In this document: positions 7,348-63,333 of the stretch, in pieces | Numbering within the stretch: the first letter of the stretch is position 1 | Layout of the letters: every line of letters begins with the position of its first letter | Assembly (NCBI RefSeq): GCF_037042905.1 | Contig: NC_087247.1 | Coordinates: forward strand, 67,394,001 to 67,458,000 | DNA: 64,000 nucleotides | Direction of reading: 5' to 3' | Origin: Lytechinus pictus | Lineage: Eukaryota | Program-made: the position numbers and the translations under genes | Notes under the pieces: generated by a model | The model's input: only the letters and a program-made list of their open reading frames with translations | Database searches by the model: none | Told to the model about the DNA's origin: nothing

Positions 7348-7513
7348 NNNNNNNNNNNNNNNNNNNNNNNNNNNNNNNNNNNNNNNNNNNNNNNNNNNNN
7401 NNNNNNNNNNNNNNNNNNNNNNNNNNNNNNNNNNNNNNNNNNNNNNNNNNNNNNNNNNNNNNNNNNNNNNNNNNNNNNNNNNNNNNNNNNNNNNNNNNNN
7501 NNNNNNNNNNNNN
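7348..7513. other. Assembly gap (166 N) in AT-rich repeat
   Basis: Run of N. The sequence aaagtgctata(c/g)tgtacataata(t/c)attatgtaca occurs on both sides. Confidence 0.98.
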
Positions 7514-7888
7514 ATACTTTATTATTATAAAGTGCTTTATAATAATAAAGTGCTATAGTGTACATAATACATTATGTACATGTTATTTGTACATAATTAA
7601 TGACCTGCTTTGACAATACCCTTTGAATCAAATTATATTTTCTTATTTTGTCTTGGAGGCCCTCAAAAAATGCCCTCAATGTTTTCTTGCTTTAAAAAAA
7701 AATCCAGCCCTTTTCTTTGAATGTATTATGCACTGGATTTCCCCTTTCCCATTGTATATTTGTAGATATTTAACCATATTTTTCTTAGATTTTCTATTTG
7801 TTGTCTAAAATTAACACATATTGCTCAAATGTCAGTGTCAGTCCTCTAATTGTTGTGTCTTTCATTGTTATGTATGCTTTGTATGCAG

Positions 7889-7944
7889 GAAAATCCAAGG
7901 ATCTGTATTCAATGCCATCATACTCCTCAATATCAAGAGAATCG
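7889..7944 (+). CDS. TCF12: E-protein (TCF3/TCF4/TCF12 family) internal coding exon, xKSKDLYSMPSYSSISRES
   Basis: Acceptor ctttgtatgcag, donor TCG|gtaagt; 56 nt, phase 1->0, which fits the next exon. Resembles TCF4 SKTERGSYSSYGRES and TCF12 GKTSERGSFSLYSRDT (recalled). The symbol stands for the family; an invertebrate gene would be co-orthologous to TCF3/4/12. Confidence 0.75.
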
Positions 7945-20227: not shown

Positions 20228-20360
20228 GGCATGGGCCAAATAAACAATGACTTGTCCATAACAAGTCCAAGTGGTTCAGTTTCTCCACATACCAAACCGG
20301 GCTCACCTTATATGTATAACCGCAGGCGGTCTTCACTAATGCCCGATCCTCCTTCTCTAA
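20228..20360 (+). CDS. TCF12: E-protein coding exon GMGQINNDLSITSPSGSVSPHTKPGSPYMYNRRRSSLMPDPPSL
   Basis: Acceptor ttttctttcattgcag, donor A|gtaagt; 133 nt, phase 0->1. Matches the TCF4 segment LSPTKPGSQYYQY...PRRRPLH. Lies within ORF 20189..20575. Confidence 0.9.
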
Positions 20361-20441
20361 GTAAGTATAATCAATATCATATTCTCATGAATAATAATTA
20401 TTTCTTGTTGCAGTCATTCAAATCTATTCAAAATAGAGAGT

Positions 20442-21944: not shown

Positions 21945-21976
21945 CGCACAAGAGAAGGAAAGCTCCCGGAATGTCG
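21945..21976 (+). CDS. TCF12: E-protein small coding exon (T)HKRRKAPGMS, basic NLS half
   Basis: Long polypyrimidine tract plus ttttcag acceptor, donor TCG|gtaagt; 32 nt, phase 1->0. Homologous to TKKVRKVPPGLPSS of TCF4/TCF12. Confidence 0.88.
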
Positions 21977-23180
21977 GTAAGTGCATTTTCCACATGTTTG
22001 GGATCGCTTCCCATGTAATATATGGGTGTAGAAAGTGGTGTGAGATGCATCAATGCGTATATTTAGCACTGTGTGTTTAGTGTTGTTTATAAGACTTGTG
22101 TTGAGCTAAAGAAAGAGTTTTCCAGTGTTGACAGGGTTGCAGTGTAGAGGGCAGTAAATCTTTCATGTTTATATTGTGATTTCCTTATCTGAAAATCATT
22201 GTAAATGCTCCTGGCTCACTGTTAGTTTTTTTGTTGAAGTTTAAAAAATAAATACTGCTGATAGAAAGATAGTTTGGGCCTTTGATCAATTATTGATTGT
22301 TATTCCAAGGAGAAGTTACTTGATATTGGAAATATTTCTTTGCTATATTATGTAGAAATTGATCACACCTTCCTTTATCCATTTGCCATGCATTAAAAAA
22401 AAAACCTTGATTAGTTGGTCAGGAATAATTGATTGTAGCCTGGTCAGGCAGGATGAACGCTTATTGCGATTGAATAGGTGTAGTGTTTAGTCCCAGTGGA
22501 TGAAATGTAGTAGGGTTAGAGATAATGGGATGAGACGAGGTTTGTGGAATGTTAGGATTGTACCCTGATGATGAACTCACTCACACTCCCTCTCTCTCTC
22601 TCTCTCTACACACACTCACTTTCCCACACACCCACCCATACACCCCACACACATTATTTCCTAGCCTAGTTTCAGCCGCTTTGTGTATTCCCCTTTTCAA
22701 AACGAATCATTTTCATTGATTACAGGGAACTGATAGGCAATTCCTGGGTTGAATAGATTTGTAACATGACAAAGTAATTGAGTGTATTCCTTTTTTGTGA
22801 TTTTATTATCAACCATATAATTATTCTGGATTTAAACTTAAATAAATAGATTCACCGTATAAATATATAGATTTTTAGTGCATGATTTTTATAGACTAAA
22901 GGCTGAAGCATATTTTCCATTTAATTCATTATAACATGTAAAATTAGGACTCATTAAAAACTTGTTTTCAAAACTATCTTTACTAAGTATTTGTACATAT
23001 AGCTTTGCACCCTAAATTGATTCTGAGAGAATGATAATCACAACAATTATTTTGATATTGATTCTCAATAACTTTTCTCTCAATGTCACCTAAGCATTAT
23101 AACCATTTGCTAGTTCTAGTACAAATATGGCAGGAAAAGCTTATTACCATGATTACTATTGTTGAATTTTATTGTATATA

Positions 23181-24428
23181 CAGTACCAGTCAAAAGTATG
23201 GGTACACCGGCAAACAGAACTGATTTTTACAATAATTTATAATTTATTCACTTATGCTCCTCAAACAGTGACAATTTAGTATAAAAATAAAGGGTAATTA
23301 TCAGGCTTCAAACTGACTTTATTTTGAAGATGAAAAATCATTTCAGAAAGCACTCAGACATGTCCAAAGACCCCCCCTCTCTCTCTCTCTCTCTCTCTCA
23401 ACCTGTCAATTTAAATCAAATGAGGATTTTTGTCATTTTGTGTTTTTAGGGTTGACTCTGTGCGTTTCATAATATTTTATTGGTTTTTAGTGAAGAATCT
23501 TTCAAAAGAAAGAACATGAGAGTAAACTGAAGGTTATGACATGGCCTTCATTGTCACCCGATCTGTATCCTATTATGGGATGAACTTGACAGAATTGTAA
23601 AGGCAAAGCAGCCAACTTCAGCTGAGCATCTTTGGGAACTCCTCTACAGAGGCCTGGGAGAACATCTCGCCAGACTTCAAGAAACTATTCAACCGAATGC
23701 CATGTGTTTGTCATGCTATTATAAAAGCCAGAGGTGGATTCTTTGAGGAATCAAAGTTTTAAGGAAGGTGTATCCTTGTCAAGAAAGTCAGATAATGCAG
23801 ATACAGAAATAACATTTTTTGTTTACAAGGTACTGTGTTTGTACTCTGTGTCTGGTCTCATTTCGATTTCAATTATCACAATCGTTTTCTCTTTTATTAT
23901 TTTGTATTCACCAAAAAGATATGCTTAACTTCAGGAACATTTTGTATTGTATTATTGAATTATTAAAGATAAAATGTAAGAAGAAAAATGAAAAAACAAA
24001 AGACTTTAAACCTTTGACTGGTAAGTTTTGAAAATATGAAAATGCTCAATTATTTCACCATTAGGATTTCTTAGCTTGCTTCAGAAGTGATGTTTGTTGT
24101 TTACTGATCAATTAATGTTGAAAGATTCTGCACTTAAAACCAATAAAATAGTATGAAACGCACAGAGTCAACCCTAAAAACACAACCTGACAAAAATCCT
24201 CATTTGACTTAAATTGACAGCTTGAGAGAGAGGGGTCTTTGGACACGACCGAGTGCTTTCTGAAATGATTTTACATCTTCAAAATATAGCCAGTTTGAAG
24301 CCTGATATTTACCCTTTAATTTGATACTAAATTGTCACTGTGTTTGAGGAACATAAGTTAATAAATTGTAATTGATTGTAAAAAATCAGTTCTGATTACA
24401 GGTGTACCCAAACTTTTGACTGGTACAG
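23181..24428 (+). mobile_element. Internally deleted Tc1-family transposon with long (~310-325 bp) inverted repeats
   Basis: TA|CAGTACCAGTCAAAAGT left end and acttttgactggtacag right end; inverted repeats at about 23181-23505 and 24118-24428; transposase remnant inside. Confidence 0.92.
23503..23762 (+). pseudogene. Tc1 transposase C-terminal remnant (frameshifted)
   Basis: Reads QKKEHESKLKVMTWPSLSPDLYPI / WDELDRIVKAKQPTSAEHLWELL / EAWENISPDFKKLFNRMPCVCHAIIKARGGFFEESKF*, matching the Tc1 WPxxSPDLNPIExxW ... RMPRxCxAVIxAxGG motifs. Confidence 0.9.
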
Positions 24429-25145
24429 GATGTGTAAAATCTTAACATTCACATGTTTCCATAGACCATATAGTGGAAGTTTGTAGCAGAATTGCATGTA
24501 CATTTTGAAAATGGTGTGGTAGCACTACAGTAAGGTGTTACATTTCCTGTGGTAAAATAATCCAGCTCAAATGCACATTTTTGCAAATAACGTTGTCTCC
24601 TGTCTCTGTTATTTATTTGAGCTACAACATTTTGTGATGTTTGATGTACCGGTATGTGCTGAAACTAGCTAGTGAAATTTATGTTGTTGCCAATATCAAG
24701 CCATTAATGCTTATACTTCCGAGTTTGACTTTTCTTGCGATTGTGTACTAATACAACTAAGGCAACTTATCAATTTGCTTGTATGCTTTGTTCTTACATT
24801 CTACTTAAATACAGTATGGATGTTGAGGAAGAGATAGAGTAGCTAGGAAAGACACAATTTCGACATTAACATTAGGTTTTCACTACTGTGGGGATAGTAT
24901 TAACACAAAGCAATACTAATGTATCCCCTTTTCCATATTTTGTAAGCGCAAAAAGAAAAAAAAAATGACTTTAAAAATTGTTATATGAGGCAAAGATTTA
25001 GATTTTTTGCCAGGGATACGTTTTTGATCGGTTTATTGGTAATAGAACCATCCTGGAACTGTGTGAGGACCGGGAGCTGCCTTGATATTATCCTGATCCC
25101 TGACCAGCCATTATTAATTCCATTCTTACCCAAAATTCAACTATA

Positions 25146-27400
25146 GGGTGATTCCATACGTGTCGTACGGGACATTTAGAGAACATTTGACAGTTTTTTT
25201 ACAAGAAAAACAAAAATATTCCAGTAAATAAAGGTGATCATCAGGTACTACCAGAGTGTTAGAAAAACCAAGACTTAACATGACTTGAATCCACATCCTG
25301 TATAATACAGATTTAAAATAGTAATGTGTCGTACGGACGCAGAAAAAGTGGCTTTTTTAGAAACCTCAAGTTTGTACTCTAAAGTCTGTGAGTTGGACAG
25401 ATAATTTTCATAGAAACTGAACTCAAATTGATATTCAATTACCCAAGAACAAACACATCTATGAAAGAAAGCAAAATAAACATTCATGAATAAATAAAGC
25501 AAATTAAAATTTTCGAGAACATTGTGGCGTACGGGACACTCAAAATGTGTCGTACGGGACATTTCTAAATTGAAGCCAAACTTTCTTACTTTATGTCTCT
25601 TTGACTTCTTCAATCACTTTATTTGGCTGATGATAATGATAATCCTATCAAACTAAAGACATTCATTATGTTAGAAACCGCTATTGGCTGAATATTTCTG
25701 TCGATATATCATAAACAAAATAATGTGTCATACGGGACACTTGTGTGTTGTACAGGCACTTGCGTGTTGTACTGGGCAGCCTGAATAAAACAATGAACTT
25801 TTTATCAATCAGAAGGGGAGCATTGCCCCTAAATTCTTCCTTTTTAATGAAAAGTCTTTTAATAAGTAGTCATTCAGGACAATATAATTAAGTAACCTCA
25901 ATATATACAATCAGGAGCAATATATTATCATTTTTTCCTGATGGGAAATGTACAATGGTTCACAGCATTTTTACGAGCTGGAAAACTTGAGGTTTTGTGT
26001 GAAGTTATGTATTAGTGAATTAATTGATTATTTCCAATACACTATTCAAACAATGAATGAATGAAACTGTTTGTGTAAATTATGGGGCTAAAATGTTATA
26101 ATTTTTCATATAGAATGTATATATACGTGATATAATTATGTTACAACTGTCACCTGTAATTCCACAATATGTTTTTTTTTCTAAAGAAATGCGATTCTAC
26201 TTTTTCAAACCTTTCTGCATTTCATGAAACCATATGGTTTGTCTTATTTTCCAGATTTTTTTTTGAACAACATGGTTTGTCTTATTTTCCAGATTTTGTT
26301 TTACAACTTGAAAAAGTAAGGAGTTTCAATACTGTATAAAAAAAAATTAGTGATCATCATGGGAAGTCCAAATAGATGATTGATAGGTACATTTTTTTTT
26401 TTACATCTTATAATAATTTCACATTAGCATGCAAGAGGAAGTAATCTTCCAGGCTAGGGTGAAACAATTATAAAGGTTTTCTTTTCATGCTCAATGACAA
26501 AGAAATTAACCTGCTCTGACCAGTGAAAATCACCAGTTTAGCTGAAGGGATTCACAAAAGAATACGCCTACATGAAGTCAATTAAAATGGTTAGAATCAC
26601 CTATTTCATGTTCTATGGAATTTAAAAAAAAGTACTTTTTCAGTTCACTTTATGTCAAATCAATTACCTAAATTAAAATAGGCCTACTATTTATAGTTTC
26701 TGAATCCAAATCCTGCAATTAAATGCATTGTGTGTCATACGCAGACCTGCCAACCAGTACGTTTTAGCCGTATTTAGTACGTTTTTGCAACCAAAATACG
26801 GCAGTACGTTTTTTCTTTGAAAAATATGTTGTTTTTTTTAATACTAAATCGTAATTTATTGAGAAAAATAATCTCTATATGTCTCTATTTCATAAAACGT
26901 ATACAAATATGGTTATTAGATCAATGTTATTTCAGGTAACTTGTTTTTTTTTCCAATCATTTTGTTAAAACCAGGGTGACGATATACACATGTTTTAATG
27001 TTTTTTTTTTCATCTGCAAGAGCAGTGCGCATTTTAGCTTGCATGCAGCTTGAGCGCCGCGATGAGCGAGTGCGCCAAGCATTTTATTATGAAATACACT
27101 TTTTTTGGGGAAAAATACAGTGTTTTTTATCACAGAATACAGTTTTTCATTCCCAGAGGTTGGCAGGTCTGCGTACGGGACAACTTTTAATAGGACAATT
27201 ATTGAAAAATGAAGGGCAGTAATTAGATCCTTATGGGATAAATCGATCACCCATGGTCAAAGATAGAGAAACTGATATTGTGAAATTGCATCATCAAAAA
27301 TAAAATTATAGGAAAAACTTTTGCATTTTCATGTGTAGTACGGGACATTGCCAAAAATAGGTTCGGATAAAGCAGGGCTGCCCCCATTATGGATCATGAA
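25146..27400 (+). mobile_element. Probable DNA transposon remnant with dispersed gtgtcgtacgggaca subterminal repeats
   Basis: About nine same-orientation copies of the motif between 25160 and 27350; left end gggtgattcc; right boundary not resolved. Hosts the MITE at 26742. Confidence 0.5.
26742..27171 (+). mobile_element. MITE with 14-bp TIR and 6-bp TSD (copy 2), nested
   Basis: Same TIRs as 18601-19007; TSD catacg/cgtacg; interrupts a gtgtcgtacgggaca motif. Confidence 0.92.
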
Positions 27401-28716
27401 AATGTTGTAGATATTATTTGGAACCATCAATTATACATTATTCCATTGACCCGCAATATTTTCAACCTTCTCGTGCTTTGCCAATAATCGTTTCAGGCAG
27501 TGTTTGTACTTGACTATTTAATTAGCAAAATTATTGAAAATGGAAAATTCCATTGTTTCCCCCCAAAAAAACTACCGGTATTCTTATTTTTTAAATAAAG
27601 GCTCTCCAAACACTTGTTAAACTAATTACAGGATATAAGGATGTGCCAACTTGTTTTACGAAAATCAGATCTCTGTAGCCTTGGGAAAACTATAGCAATT
27701 TAGTTTTTTTTTTGGTTTCAATTACATAGTGTGATATCACAAATGCATATAATGAGGATGTATTATTGAAAACAAGCTTGATGTTGACTGTACTCAACAT
27801 TTCTACTGAAATCATTATAGGGAATCCAACTCATTATATCACGGGTGCTCAGGTGCTGTTTTTTTCCTAATTGGTAACGACAGACCCTGCATAATTAAAT
27901 GTTGGATTACAATTTTCTCTCTATCTATCCCTCTCTCTCTATCCAATTAACTTGCTATGAAGATTTCTTCCGTGCTTTGATCAGAAGCCAATCCTAGCAT
28001 CATGATTGCTTTTGGTTGCTCAGTAAAGAACAATTCAGTTATGCGGTCTGCTGAAATGAGACTTTATAAGTGAGAGAAAAAGTAGGAAAACTTTTCCTTT
28101 GTCTTCTTGTTGCTTTAACATTAATCTCTTATAAAGTACATTCTATACGGTAGATATGTGTTGATTTTGTGCCAGGCATGTTGATGTCTGAAGACGAATT
28201 ATTCATCTGAATATTTGTAAAAGGGGTGATTTTATGTATTTGATTTTCTTTTTTTTTTCCTTTGCTTTTTGACTATCATGTTTGTATATTATTGACATTC
28301 ACATTCCTGATTTGGCAGACTGTTTACATAATGACAGGCAGAGTCATTTCAATATGTACACACTTAAAATAAGCATTTATTGAAGTTAGTCTGCATGAAT
28401 TTGATTTCCACTTGTAATTGTACCAATTCAAAAATCACAGTTGATTTTATAGATAAAAGGTGTGGGTAGTACCAGATTTCAGAATAAAACAAGGCCAACA
28501 AGTAAATTTGAACCTTGGATCATAAATGTGATGGTACTTGTTAGAAGCTGAGGAGGTTGTTGTTATGCAATAACTCTTTAAGAGCAAACCTAGTAATGTT
28601 GTATTACTAATCATCCTCATACTATACCCACCAGCTTCTTTATCAAATCACTTCATCAGGATAGCTGATCCTAGAATAAAAAAGAGTATACGATTTAATA
28701 AAAAAGAAAGGTAGTG

Positions 28717-28851
28717 ATTGGCTTATATCAGACATGAAGTGTAGCTGACTGACCGAGAACAAGATAGAGTTATTATGTATCACTCTATAAACTGGCTTCC
28801 AGACCAATTGGATTGATTGTTGATTATAGTGTGTTCACATATCTTTGGATC
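28717..28851 (+). promoter_or_regulatory. Candidate intronic promoter for the alternative first exon
   Basis: ATTGG (inverted CCAAT) at 28717-28721, AGATAG near 28762, TATAAA at 28786-28791 and ATG at 28852; spacing is typical of a TATA promoter. Confidence 0.45.
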
Positions 28852-28926
28852 ATGTGGTATGGAAATAGTTGCTCAGAGATGGATCAATCAATGTGTATAT
28901 CATTGCAACAGCTTCCTACGATGTCT
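28852..28926 (+). CDS. Candidate alternative first coding exon (E-Alt-like), MWYGNSCSEMDQSMCISLQQLPTMS
   Basis: ATG-initiated 25-codon open frame ending at TCT|gtaagt in phase 0, compatible with the VYSP exon at 39833. Preceded by inverted CCAAT and TATAAA. Same intron as the vertebrate HEBAlt/E2-2Alt exons. Confidence 0.6.
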
Positions 28927-29145
28927 GTAAGTATGAGAGTTGTTATGATTGCTTATATAAATTATTCTCCCTGAGCCAAACTTGTATTAAAATCAAATGT
29001 CATCCAGGTCCAAGCATTTTTTTTTTGAGAGATCAGGTTTGCAATACAATGTAATATCAAATGAAAACTAGTTGTGCATTGCGCGAAATTCCCATTTTAT
29101 ACGCAATGACTGATTTTTGAAAAATTTCTTGACACGTGCACAAAA

Positions 29146-30519
29146 TTAAGAAAGAAAGTAAAGAAAGAGAATAACTAAAGAATGAGCGAAATAAAGAATG
29201 AACAAAAGAAAGAAAGAATAAAAAAAAAGAAATAAAGGTTCTATTTTATTCTCTGGAATAAAAAGGAAAGAAAGAAAGTAATTGAAAAGGCATTAAAGTG
29301 TCAGAAAGTAGAAATAATAAAGAATGAAACGAAAAAACAAAGGAACGTAAAGAGAAAAAAAGAAAAAAATGAAAATAAGAAAGAAAGAAAACAAAGAAAA
29401 AGAAGGAAGAAATAAAAATTAAGGACGTTCCACAATTAAAGTGAAATCCATGTCATTTTCACCAAACTTTGCACATAGATACTTTAGAACCTTAATATTC
29501 GAAATATGCAAAAACATAGGTCCATGCGCTTGATTTTTTGCTATAGAGCTTCAAAGTTCACCTAAATTGGTGTTCTTAAAAATTGCGCATTCAAAAGAAT
29601 TTGGCATTTTTAAACCGCCCAAGATTACTACAATGAGTTTAAACCTTTATTACTCAGTCAAAATACATGAAAAAGTCATCAAATTTCGCAAAAGAGTTAA
29701 TAATTGTATCGTTAGAATGGAGAATCTATTTATAGTGCTATTTGTTTGCAATTTTAAGTTTAACAGCACTGCCAGTTCTTAAAAATGGCGTAAAAGATAA
29801 CAAAATCCCAATCTAAAAAATGTGAAATTTCAGTAACAAACTCTAAACGTACAATAAATGCTGCACTTTATTCAAAATCCATGTCATTTTCACCAAAATT
29901 TGCAGAGTTGTAAAGGAAGGTATACCGAAGAGGTACAAACATTAAAAAATAGGGGTTCATGTGCTTGCTTTTAAACTATCAGCATTTTTATTAGAGCAAA
30001 TGTGCTTTTAAAAACACCAAAAATGCGCCGAATACTTTGTATCTATGTGAAGAAAAAATCAAAACCGCTCTACCATTTATTCAAACTCGGGGTAATATTC
30101 GTGATTCTTGGCAGCACTGCAGAGTAAAGTATTTTGAAATTGTAGATAATTTTTTTTTAATCGTCCATGGAATAATTCCACTTTTTAGCTTCATGAAATA
30201 ACACATCGGATCTGCAGTTAAAGTACAGAAGATGAGAAAAATCAGCTCATACCCGCAGCTAATTAATCACCTGTTCATCCATTGTGACGTCAGCGCGCAG
30301 AGTGTAAACTATGCGCAGATCATAATGCGCACAAACATAACTGTGGAACGTCCTTAAGGGAAAGAAGAAAGAAAGAAAAAATGGAAAATAAAATGAAGAA
30401 ATAAAAAAGGAAGAACAAAAATAAAGATTAAAGAATGAATGTAAGAATGAAAGATAAAGAACAATAAGAAGAAATAAAAAGATTACAAAATATAAATTGA
30501 AGAAAGAAAGAAAAGGGGA

Positions 30520-30563
<44 letters not shown>

Positions 30564-30835
30564 AAAAAAAAAGGAGAAAAGAAAGACAGAAAGTTATAAA
30601 GAATGAAAGAAAATGAGAGGGTTAAATAAAAAAAGGAAGAAAGATGAAGAATAAATGAAAGAAAGCAAAAGAAAAATAAGGAAGAAATGAAAAGAATGAA
30701 TGAATAATGAAAGAAAGACAGATAGACAGAAAGGAATTAGAAACAGAGAAAATAAGGAAAGAAATTCAAAAAAATTATAGAAAAAAGAAACGGGACAATA
30801 TAAAGCGTGAATGAATGAAAGAAAGGATGGAAGGA
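29146..30835 (+). repeat. Long purine-rich (GAAA)n-derived low-complexity tract, split by a transposon
   Basis: Degenerate GAAA/GAAT repeats at 29146-29420 and 30358-30835, with perfect (GAAA)n at about 30518-30565. Confidence 0.9.
29423..30353. mobile_element. Kolobok-like non-autonomous element
   Basis: TTAA|GGACGTTCCACA ... TGTGGAACGTCC|TTAA: perfect 12-bp TIR, TTAA TSD, RR...YY termini. Confidence 0.88.
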
Positions 30836-38580: not shown

Positions 38581-39832
38581 TATCTCCCTTTTTTGGTTCC
38601 CTGAAAGAATTCATACATGATGAACTTAATTTCAGAAAAATGTGCTTTCAGTATAAAGATTGTAATAAAACTGGTGATTCAAGAAGTATGTTTCATAAGA
38701 TAGAGATGAAATGCAGGTATAAGAATGGAACACCCTTATATCAAATTTTGAATTAATTTAACTAGTGCCCAATCTATAGGTTTGTAAGAGCCTGGGGCCC
38801 AAATGCAATAAAAAAGATTTTTATTTTATGAGAAGAAGCACGTTCCTGCTCTTTTTTCGAATCTCCATTTTCCATCGTTTTGTCCTTCAGTTCCCTCTCT
38901 CTCTTAACGTCTTTCTGTAAAATCAAGTGAAAAGGAGTCATCTTATTGGCCAACATGTAACAGGGAATGGGTGTAGGTTATAGGCTCAGATTTTTAGAAT
39001 TCTTATGCAGTCATTTGGGGTCGATGGCACCCGCTCCCTGTGCTCAGATTTGTTCTAATTTCTGCAATACAGTAATCAATCAGTTTATTTGATTAGTGGA
39101 AGATGCTGCACGTTTGAAGCGATATGAGAGAGACTGATGTAGCTGTTTGTATTCACGGCACTACTCAACCTATGAAAGTGCACCAATAGTCATTTTTTTA
39201 AACTACAAGTCTTTTTCATTTCATTTTTTTTTTGGTGCCATTCTCATTTTCCTGTGCTTGCACACAGTATCGGCTGCATTTCCCAAATGTTATAAACATG
39301 TACAAAGTTTTAAAGAGTGAAAGGTTTAGCTGTGAGTGCAGATGTCAGAATATAAGTTCAAAGGAAAACAAATGAAGTGAACTGGTGAACTAGAAATAGC
39401 CATTATACTTTATCTATATTTATCTCTATATTATCTTATAGGAGAAATTAAACAATTCCTTTTTTTTGCAATCTTCTTTAAAAATTGGGGAGTGTCGTTC
39501 AGGTTGGAACACAATTTCAAATGATTTCTATGAATTTATGTATACTGAATATGAACATACTATCCTACATATTCAAATTTAAAGAGAATGAAATGTTCTC
39601 CCTTTGAATTTTACCTCTTTAAACTTAATTTGTCTAATTTTATATTTTCTGCACTCTTTATATTGCCTACGTGGAAACAAAATTACTAAGCATAATAATG
39701 ACAAAAATAGATTATGTAAAAAAGCCCCGTTACTATATTCAATTATACTTCTGCTGATTTTAGATTACATTTTAAAACTCTCTTCTTTCTCTTTTCACAA
39801 CCCCCCCCCCTTCTCTCTCTCTTTCCAAGCAG

Positions 39833-39920
39833 GTGTATTCTCCAGGTGCAGAAGACTATCATTCAGACCCTAATTATTCATCGCCTAAACCCCCTGGCAT
39901 GTATCCAGAATATTTCATGG
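39833..39920 (+). CDS. TCF12: E-protein coding exon VYSPGAEDYHSDPNYSSPKPPGMYPEYFM
   Basis: Acceptor ctctctttccaagcag, donor G|gtgagt; 88 nt, phase 0->1. Homologous to TCF4 [23 protein letters not shown]...FFMQ. Confidence 0.92.
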
Positions 39921-41428: not shown

Positions 41429-41574
41429 AAGGTTCACACTCCCAGGGCCACTCTCACAGTAGTACAAATCCATGGAGCAGCAATGGCATGGCGCCAACGT
41501 CCAATAGCTTCCATTCCTTACATAACTCCAGTTCTTATTCTCAGGCAGGGGAATACCCTACACATGAACCTATG
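41429..41574 (+). CDS. TCF12: E-protein coding exon (E)GSHSQGHSHSSTNPWSSNGMAPTSNSFHSLHNSSSYSQAGEYPTHEPM
   Basis: Acceptor tttttgttgtcctag, donor ATG|gtgagt; 146 nt, phase 1->0. Homologous to TCF4 DGHHSSDPWSSSSGM...SSSY...HPHERL. Confidence 0.92.
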
Positions 41575-44391: not shown

Positions 44392-45737
44392 TCATAGTTA
44401 GAATGATACATATTATTGGTAAAGGGGAAACACAACAGAAAAAGTGTGGCAAAACAGGAAATTTAAACTGCAATAATCAAGATTGACTGGAATTGAAATA
44501 AAACTAAAAAAGAGACCAGTGCTGAAAGAGACACAAAAAGATCCAACTTAAGAGAATGAATCAGTGGTTGAAAAGCAATGTTTTTGGCATGTTAACACTG
44601 GTCAGACATGCTGGGAGGAAGAGTGAAATTTACATAATCAACAAGAGAAGGAAGGTCCTATTGGCAGACCACCAGGCTACCAATTATTAGTAGTTATTCC
44701 ATCAGTGTTACCATTCAAATAGAGTTAGTGCCAATGCTTTACATTCTAAATCAATTATCAAACGTAATAATTTTCAAACTCTTGACAGAGGGCTGGAAAG
44801 TTTCCACTTTCCAACCCCCAGGTATGACATAGGAGAATTACTAAAACGGGGATGAAAATTCATTTATATGCATGTCCCATCTTTAAGATAAGCTATAAAA
44901 TAGCTGCTACCTTGATTTGAGTTTACTTCACTTGTCACCAACAAAATATAGCCAGACCCTGTAGATTTCATCAATTTAAGCATGTAAGAAAAGCTATTTA
45001 TGATATTTATTGGTGATAGAAGTAACAAAAATCAAATGTGTAATCTGTAAGAAAACAAAAACTGTTTTCTCTGTGTACAAACCTATGAAATCACACCGCT
45101 TCTTAAACTGAATGACGTCATAGAGTTAGGCTGGTGAACAGCATATTGAAGCCTATATCCAAAGCTTGATAATTTGAGCTATTCTCAAGCAAAATCTGCT
45201 TGCAAGTGGTGAAAATGCTTAAACCTTTCATTGCTTTGTTTTGTAGTTTAAAAGCTTTTGATTGGTATTTACTTTGTCATTTCACTTTTGAGTTCGGTCG
45301 GGGTCTTTAAAGTCTGTACTTCGTTGGAGTATGGAAATGGCTATGAAGAGTATATAATTACATGAAAATTACAAGTATTATAGTGGTAACTTGTGTTGTA
45401 AACAAAGGAAAAATTATTCCCCTCTCACTCTGTCTTGTTGTTACCCCATTCCATCTCTCCTTCTCTCTGGCTTTGTTTCTCTCTCTCCCTCCTTTCCTCA
45501 AACAACTATCTAGACTTCTCTTCACATTCTCTTGACTTGTATTTTTAAAGTCATCCCATTAATTAGGATTAAACATAATTTTTTAAAAATTGCAAACATT
45601 CACAAAATTCTTAAGACCTTATGAGCTAAAACTATAAGCCTATACAAACCCCCAGCATACAATATGAATAAAACTGAATTAAAGAAATATTTTTTGTAAT
45701 AGATTGAAATGAATATTCTTGCTTTATGTGATTTCAG

Positions 45738-45876
45738 TATCAGAGTAGTAACAGCGGTATGTCATCAGGTCATGACCCTCTTAGTCTTCCTCCAATGACA
45801 ACGTTTAGACCAGGTACCACTAACACTGCCCCATACACCTCATCACCGCCCATTAATGGCACAGAGACAGTCATGT
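45738..45876 (+). CDS. TCF12: E-protein coding exon YQSSNSGMSSGHDPLSLPPMTTFRPGTTNTAPYTSSPPINGTETVM
   Basis: Acceptor gatttcag, donor T|gtaagt; 139 nt, phase 0->1. Contains the E-protein motifs SLPPM(S/T)TF and PPxNGT(D/E). Confidence 0.94.
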
Positions 45877-46483
45877 GTAAGTAACACAATCTACCTTTCA
45901 TTCCTCTTGGAGAACATATATGTGCTTTAAATCTATTTGTAGAGGATCATTTTAAAGTTTTTCCTTCTTTGAGTTATAAACCTTCTTATGTTATGCAAAA
46001 TAGGACATATAGTTTATAAAATTGTTGAATTTTAAAACATATCAGAGCATGAAACTTTACCCTAATGTACAAGAAACACTAAACGAACCCTAAACAAATG
46101 AAAGTTTGAAGATTATAACAACCCCTCCGTAAAAGGTGAATTTTATATAATTTTTGTCCTTCAGAGAGGACCTTTAGATATTGGTCATCTGCTCATGAAC
46201 AAGTATTCATACTTTCATACCAGGTAGAAACTAACAGCCAACAAAATGATGGATAACTTTGTTCAAATTTAGTTATAGGCTACATGCATGTTTTATTTTT
46301 GGTAATATTATCCTTTGCCAGTGTAAAATGTTGATTTAAAGAATATGTTTTCATATAAATAATAATGATTTACTACATTTATAATATTGAAAAAAATTCT
46401 TTCATGTCCTTATTGCAGTAACCTATATTGATTAGAGGGTCTTAATCAACACAATTTTTTATTATTTATCTTTGATTTGACAG

Positions 46484-46566
46484 CAAGTAGTAGAGGGAAT
46501 GGCACAAATAACTCATCAGGTTCCAGCTCACATACAGGAGCTGCACTTGGCAAAGCTCTAGCATCT
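46484..46566 (+). CDS. TCF12: E-protein coding exon (S)SSRGNGTNNSSGSSSHTGAALGKALAS
   Basis: Acceptor tttgatttgacag, donor TCT|gtaagt; 83 nt, phase 1->0. Carries the diagnostic E-protein motif SQTGDALGKALAS, with the intron at the same position as in vertebrates (just before IYSPDH). Confidence 0.95.
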
Positions 46567-46949
46567 GTAAGTAAAAGAATGGCTTCGTTTCTTGGAAGCA
46601 TGTTGAAGGATGAGAATAATGGTTGTTGTGAGGAAAAAAAGAGTAGGATAAAGTTTTAAAAAGTCATAATAAGCATTTTCACATACCCTGCAAATGAGCA
46701 GTGAAAGGTCATTTAAGATAAACCATCAAGGTACTATTCATATTCATGAACATACATATTCATGATTTGATGATTATTCATACATTCCTTTATAGAATTA
46801 TTTTTATCACATCCATTGAATAGCAACAAAGTGTTCATATTCACTAGTATTTGACAGTGGCCCAAATAATAGTCAATGTTCTGAATTCAGATAATACCAT
46901 AAATAAATACCAAACTTGATCACTGACATACTTTTTTTAGTCACCTAAG

Positions 46950-63201: not shown

Positions 63202-63333
63202 ATGTATAGTCAAGCAGCCCACACTATGCAGGCGGAGTCTGGCTACCCTGTACCGGTAGCTGTGACTGTAGCATCATATCATCAGCAGCCGTCCATGTTT
63301 ATACCCAACTATGCACATGCTAGATATCCATGG
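63202..63333 (+). CDS. Candidate alternative first coding exon, MYSQAAHTMQAESGYPVPVAVTVASYHQQPSMFIPNYAHARYPW
   Basis: aagATG start, 44 open codons more GC-rich than the flanks, donor TGG|gtaagc in phase 0, which fits the expected next (IYSPDH-type) exon beyond the window. Confidence 0.6.

Follow-up and report, generated by a model that had tools for sequence, protein, structure and literature searches.

The window analysed is a stretch of 64,000 nucleotides of the Lytechinus pictus genome (contig NC_087247.1, positions 67,394,001 to 67,458,000). Searches with tblastn using the E-proteins of Lytechinus and Diadema located it inside the sea-urchin E-protein gene, on the + strand. This gene is the single class I bHLH E-protein gene of sea urchins and the orthologue of TCF12/HEB, TCF4/E2-2 and TCF3/E2A, and it contains the HLH domain and the conserved exons of this class, all of them on one strand and in order. 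The exons were collinear on the + strand between C3:67385372 and 67504534, covering at least about 119 kb, with the bHLH exon at C3:67500259-67500501 and the PF00010 domain present in the orthologues. The orthologous genes measure 121 kb in L. variegatus and 153 kb in D. antillarum.

The tblastn exon map of the window comprised, all on the + strand, canonical exons at 7885-7944 and 20228-20362 and a canonical micro-exon of 32 nt (..HKRRKAPGMS, 21945-21976) whose donor, TCG/GTAAGT, forms the 5' edge of an intron of 17.9 kb. On the 3' side of this intron were found the VYSPG..EYFM exon (39830/39833-39920, encoding VYSPGAEDYHSDPNYSSPKPPGMYPEYFM plus the G of the next codon), which acts as the shared acceptor exon, and the exons at 41429-41574 (..EGSHSQGH..THEPM, also shared and served to check the spliced frame), 45738-45875 (shared) and 46483-46569 (..GKALAS). 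The VYSPG exon is preceded by a tandem acceptor of the NAGNAG type (AAG/CAG/GTG, 39828-39835), and the L. variegatus RefSeq isoforms use both acceptors with either first exon, the junctions reading ..GMSQVYSPG or ..GMSVYSPG in one case and ..TMSQVYSPG or ..TMSVYSPG in the other. An assembly gap of 166 N was present at 7348-7513, in an intron located further 5' in the gene. According to this map, the exon studied here (28852-28926) lies inside the 17.9-kb intron directly before the VYSPG exon, in agreement with the location that had been proposed from the sequence alone.

The region of the candidate start exon extends from 28717 to 28932, and the elements that the sequence-only reading had described in it (an inverted CCAAT, a TATA box, an ATG, 25 open codons and a phase-0 GTAAGT) were all recovered at the positions it gave. 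The most 5' of them is the ATTGG, or inverted CCAAT, at 28717-28721 (+ strand), a putative promoter element situated 65 nt 5' of the candidate TATA box TATAAA (28786-28791, + strand), which is likewise a putative promoter element and lies 61 nt 5' of the ATG. The coding part of the alternative first coding exon (28852-28926, + strand) consists of this ATG (28852-28854, + strand) and 24 further codons, encodes MWYGNSCSEMDQSMCISLQQLPTMS and ends at a codon boundary, where the phase-0 splice donor TCT/GTAAGT follows (28927-28932, + strand); the junction at this donor is implied by RefSeq isoforms. Reading of the sequence from 28500 to 29200 revealed an in-frame stop codon (TAG at 28765) 5' of the ATG, and the ATG at 28852, which carries an A at -3, is the first one 3' of the TATA box at 28786. 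A palindrome, CCAATTGG (28804-28811, with no strand assigned), which follows the TATA box and precedes the ATG, would be inside the leader or at its 5' end. An AG at 28828-28829, 22 nt 5' of the ATG, is preceded by a T-rich stretch. Neither GCM nor Ets motifs were found 5' of the exon, and the few GATA and E-box matches there were uninformative. The segment 28500-29072 occurs once in the 812-Mb genome.

The micro-exon and the alternative exon share their 3' ends (21971-21982 and 28921-28932, respectively), both reading ..ATGTC(G/T)/GTAAGT and, at protein level, ..MS. The likeness goes no further than this. An origin of the alternative exon as a duplicate of the micro-exon was considered and rejected, their nucleotide similarity being at chance level (13% of shuffles and 22% of intron windows match as well).

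Several repeats were found in the intron. A transposon of about 2 kb occupies 25141-26741 and 27172-27574 and is interrupted by another repeat at 26742-27171. The genome has more than 40 copies of this transposon with 90-95% identity; on C5 (39.67-39.71 Mb) and C154, some of them are arranged in tandem and recur about every 3.9 kb. An inverted pair of copies (23183-23505 and 24118-24426) of about 320 nt, 86% identical, is separated by about 600 nt. On the other side of the exon, 146 nt 3' of the donor, there is a dispersed repeat of about 125 nt (29073-29200; at least 40 copies, 79-91% identity), and AAGA microsatellites are present at 29148-29418 and 30377-30733. The insertion of the dispersed repeat may be species-specific, since the match between the window and a contig of the sister species ends exactly at 29067.

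Proteins carrying the exon were identified through the downstream part of the gene. When 1.84 billion representative proteins were searched without a profile, the exon at 45732-45881 retrieved a full-length E-protein of Diadema; with this protein, a word-indexed search yielded an L. variegatus cluster of 14 members, the N-termini of which were compared. Two of them, the RefSeq "transcription factor 12-like" isoforms X10 (XP_041458145.1, 672 aa) and X11 (XP_041458147.1, 671 aa), here P0126 and P0129, begin with MWYGNSCSEMDQSMCISLQQLPTMS(Q)VYSPGAEDY, and their residues 1-25 are identical to the translation of the window exon 28852-28926. The acceptor at 39833 gives X11, and that at 39830, 3 nt further 5', adds a Gln and gives X10. 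When the segments 28852-28926, 39833/39830-39920, 41429-41574 and 45738-45875 were spliced in silico, residues 1-149/150 of X11 and X10 were obtained with 0 mismatches. Because the N-termini of both isoforms are reproduced exactly by this splice, the exon is, on the strength of that identity, an already annotated alternative first coding exon of the congener L. variegatus and not a new one. The proposal, made from the letters of the window, of an Alt-type first coding exon of 25 codons spliced to 39833 was in this way borne out by X11 and, through 39830, by X10. In P0129, the AD1 motif LSDLLDFSAMF and KRRKAP are both absent, and RLDDAI (RMEERLDDAINVL, the AD2/LH helix) is present at residue 261 and the HLH domain (PF00010) at 471-523.

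RefSeq XP models are computational. The donor at 28927 is, however, common to two annotated introns, with acceptors at 39830 and 39833, a situation hard to reach by a pure ab initio 5' extension and which, considering how such pipelines work, suggests read support. The L. pictus models XP_063953692.1 and XP_054750390.1 (P0127 and P0134) have the internal Met of MYPEYFM as their first residue and leave the exon out, although it is intact in this species, and this absence would also argue against an automatic ab initio extension. As both models start at that internal Met, the E-protein gene of L. pictus looks poorly annotated. The second of them (160 aa, "transcription factor 4-like") reads past the donor of the GKALAS exon into the intron, giving VSKRMASFLGSMLKDENNGCCEEKKSRIKF and then a stop codon; the read-through part is identical to window 46570-46656, and the model either derives from a retained intron or is truncated. 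Another urchin sequence, P0001 (UniParc UPI000222B6B1, 194 aa), has the AD1 exon (..LSDLLDFSAMF..NYKQ) joined directly to the EGSHSQGH exon and skips all the exons between them, the VYSPG exon included. Either this is an old, erroneous model or another urchin has an isoform in which these exons are skipped.

No Alt-type isoform was present among the isoforms examined in the Diadema annotation. The protein searches gave no Alt isoforms of S. purpuratus or other echinoderms, their matches being the Lytechinus and Diadema clusters and the 194-aa fragment P0001. Likewise, no protein sharing words with the stop-to-stop ORF 28768-28971 was found among the proteins of 37-119 aa of a 15-billion-protein collection, a size range that makes this search blind to full-length isoforms.

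The frequency at which such a set of motifs could appear by chance was also estimated. TATAAA, CCAAT and ATTGG each occur about 1-1.5 times per kb in the local DNA, which has 31-35% GC, and within the 17.9-kb intron the density is 1.5 per kb for TATAAA and about 1 per kb for ATTGG; at this last density, the ATTGG at 28717 alone is weak evidence. Units made of an ATG, 20-60 codons and a phase-0 GTAAGT number 3 on the + strand of the 64-kb window, one of which belongs to a real canonical exon (7885-7944) and forms its 3' part, and there is 1 donor of this type on the - strand. A TATAAA located 40-90 nt 5' with a CCAAT or ATTGG further 5' was found for 12 of 1539 ATGs (0.8%). From these two quantities, therefore, about 0.03-0.04 full constellations are expected per window, a figure to be read knowing that the motif set was picked after the sequence had been seen. 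The constellation of CCAAT, TATA, ATG and donor exceeds chance, for a motif set chosen post hoc. The + strand of the intron contains 5 GTAAGT, and only that at 28927 stands, in phase 0, at the end of a frame opened by an ATG, so the description of this donor as the best one in the non-repeat DNA of the intron was a fair one.

Sequencing reads from runs X1, X3, X22 and X23 were aligned to positions 27580-29140. None of the sequencing runs containing 28690-29060 was labelled as RNA. Run X1, from the same species, gave a contig of 221 nt that corresponds to 28807-29025 with 100% identity and passes unspliced through the donor, the rest of the 1.5 kb being bare; this contig could be DNA, pre-mRNA or a product primed internally at the A-rich tract found from 29148 onwards. 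The 5' end of the contig (28807) is located 21 nt 3' of the first T of the TATA box. The usual spacing between a TATA box and the start of transcription is about 30 nt, and the position of this end neither supports nor refutes a TATA-directed start. Run X3, from the sister species, gave a single contig of 2149 nt, colinear with 27580-29067, unspliced and genomic-like. The raw rRNA-depleted RNA runs X22 and X23 contributed 0 and 1 reads, counts that had no positive control. Neither a joint nor a loose end was seen at 28926 in X1, X3, X22 or X23, the RNA runs among them having these 0-1 reads.

The contig of the sister species, presumably L. variegatus, is about 3-4% different from the intron in the window. 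It retains the ATTGG, the TATAAA, the ATG, the open frame and the donor, with a 1-nt insertion after 28722. The only difference in the 180 nt of 28771-28950 is a C>T change at 28872, which is synonymous (Cys). Local conservation was nevertheless rejected as evidence of constraint, because the segment 27817-28034 is as clean as 28771-28950 and a single change in 180 nt is consequently not significant.

In our view, the region probably contains a real alternative 5' coding exon that is transcribed from an intronic start, spliced to 39830/39833 and gives rise to an E-protein lacking AD1 and able to dimerise and to bind DNA. Transcription would begin within the intron just 3' of the TATAAA at 28786 and the CCAAT-type boxes, near 28815-28825 according to the sequence-only reading, producing a transcript with 28852-28926 as its first coding exon. 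The donor at 28927 would then be joined to the tandem acceptor 39830/39833, bypassing all the canonical exons further 5', and translation from the ATG at 28852 would yield a protein of about 671-672 residues with a private N-terminus of 25 residues. The predicted product would be devoid of AD1 and of the KRRK micro-exon and would retain the AD2/LH helix (RMEERLDDAINVL) and the bHLH. Since these two parts are kept, dimerisation and binding to E-boxes would still be possible, and the recruitment of co-activators would be altered, as in the vertebrate HEBAlt and E2-2Alt. We infer that the exon is used in L. pictus too, with a biology like that of SpE-Alt, the alternative form of S. purpuratus.

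Two other explanations of the same exon were weighed against an intronic start. The exon could be coding but internal, a non-coding exon located further 5' being spliced to the AG at 28828-28829 (ttgattgttgattatag/TGTG), in which case the CCAAT and TATA motifs would be irrelevant. The AG and the T-rich stretch 22 nt 5' of the ATG speak for such an acceptor, and the density of TATAAA and CCAAT-type motifs in this DNA is in keeping with their having no role. Nevertheless, the many G and A that break up the tract before the AG make it a poor polypyrimidine tract, and the X1 contig starts at 28807 and continues across the AG, although X1 may not be RNA. Moreover, vertebrates use the Alt exon as a first exon, under a promoter of its own (PMC9385190). 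For these reasons we regard an internal exon as rather unlikely.

The remaining explanation is that the ORF is a product of chance followed by a good but unused donor, that the RefSeq isoforms are a computational completion, and that short transcripts are translated from the Met of MYPEYFM. The lack of spliced contigs from runs X1, X3, X22 and X23 and of fragment proteins in the 37-119 aa range, the start of the L. pictus models P0127 and P0134 at that Met, and the occurrence of ATG-ORF-GTAAGT units elsewhere in the window (3 on the + strand in all and 1 on the - strand) are compatible with it, as are the non-significant local conservation and a peptide unlike any known Alt domain. But an ab initio extension would not normally generate two annotated introns (X10 and X11) on the donor at 28927, nor would it be expected to leave the same intact sequence unused in the L. 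pictus models. In addition, the promoter-like constellation is rare, and S. purpuratus reportedly has an Alt form arising from the homologous position. A chance ORF was therefore judged unlikely, and the alternative first exon with its intronic start is retained as the preferred explanation.

A further internal start may exist in the same gene. The segment 63202-63339 is a candidate second intronic ATG exon that would also lead to an N-terminally shortened E-protein. The intron that contains it (46570 to about 73160) follows the GKALAS exon; this is not the vertebrate Alt position, and owing to this location a start there would remove far more of the protein. In Diadema antillarum, XP_071490210.1 (P0136, 501 aa) has a private N-terminus of 80 residues followed immediately by SRMEERLDDAINVL (AD2). 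This internal-start form has a position comparable to that of the 63202 exon, and "MYS" is present in both N-termini; the resemblance between the 63202 exon and the P0136 N-terminus was, however, at chance level (p = 0.33) and was rejected.

The reading of raw DNA alone recovered an annotated alternative first exon exactly. The concept of an Alt-type form was already familiar from the literature on sea urchins and vertebrates, and the residual value of this result is the annotation gap, together with the fact that position, and not peptide, is what the exon has in common with the vertebrate Alt exons. The gap consists in the public E-protein models of L. pictus starting at an internal Met and omitting an intact exon. 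If the alternative exon is used as proposed, the urchin gene would, with the start at 63202, encode three nested N-termini.

The Alt exon of vertebrate Tcf12, which encodes 23 aa, is located between exons 8 and 9, and HEBAlt lacks AD1 and contains AD2 and bHLH (PMC9385190). In the sequences retrieved here, the short vertebrate isoforms read MYCAYPVPGMGSNSLMYYYNGKT/VYAPS in TCF12 and MYCAYTIPGMGGNSLMYYYNGKA/VYAPS in TCF4, and canonical mouse TCF12 reads ..KVRKVPPGLPSS/VYAPS. HEBAlt (TCF12), E2-2Alt/TCF4-A and the Lytechinus exon thus occupy the same intron, before the VY[AS]P exon, with the same phase 0. This equivalence upholds the earlier identification of the exon as the positional Alt exon, the vertebrate one lying directly before VYAPS (PMC9385190). 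The private N-termini are similar in length (23 aa in vertebrates and 25 aa in Lytechinus), and the vertebrate Alt forms and the Lytechinus product have in common the loss of AD1 and of the K(V/R)RK exon, of the NLS type, and the conservation of AD2 and bHLH.

The resemblance does not extend to the peptide. The local alignment of the Lytechinus peptide with the vertebrate Alt domain scored 18, shuffled sequences scoring 17.4 +/- 3.8, and 42% of the shuffles were at least as good, so that the little similarity noted from the sequence alone was confirmed. The vertebrate Alt domain (MYCAY..NSLMYYYNGK) has five Tyr and a YYY motif, which regulates the activity of HEBAlt and constitutes the regulatory core of the domain (PMC9385190), whereas the Lytechinus peptide has one Tyr and YYY is absent. 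A scan of the whole 17.9-kb intron gave no ATG exon more Alt-like (MY..YYY) than this one. Among the features of Alt forms, then, the exon position, the short in-frame N-terminus and an AD1-less product with AD2 and bHLH were found in Lytechinus, and the YYY domain was not; to judge by sequence, the Lytechinus isoform is Alt-type by its architecture and not by its domain.

The papers citing Schrankel et al. 2016 (Dev Biol 416:149-161) did not give the sequence of SpE-Alt. This protein is said to have been described by those authors as an alternative product, in S. purpuratus, of the only E-protein gene of echinoids; its start is reportedly homologous to the vertebrate Alt start, and its expression is said to occur in differentiating pigment (immune) cells. 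The exon 28852-28926 is likely the orthologue of the SpE-Alt exon. A Lytechinus isoform with the position of the vertebrate Alt forms, an unrelated peptide of 25 residues and no YYY has implications for the extent to which the results on the vertebrate YYY phospho-switch apply to the sea-urchin immune-cell model. Since the position matches and the peptide is unrelated, what echinoids and vertebrates have conserved appears to be the architecture, that is, a separately controlled form without AD1, and not the Alt domain. It is tentatively possible, although we think it less probable than the contrary, that the internal promoter has stayed where it was, in the intron directly before the VY[AS]P exon, since the common ancestor of echinoderms and vertebrates while the peptide was fully replaced; the alternative is an independent origin in echinoids. 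If the peptide was indeed replaced, the conserved element between HEBAlt, E2-2Alt and the urchin form would be an AD1-less E-protein under separate control and not an Alt domain with a YYY switch.
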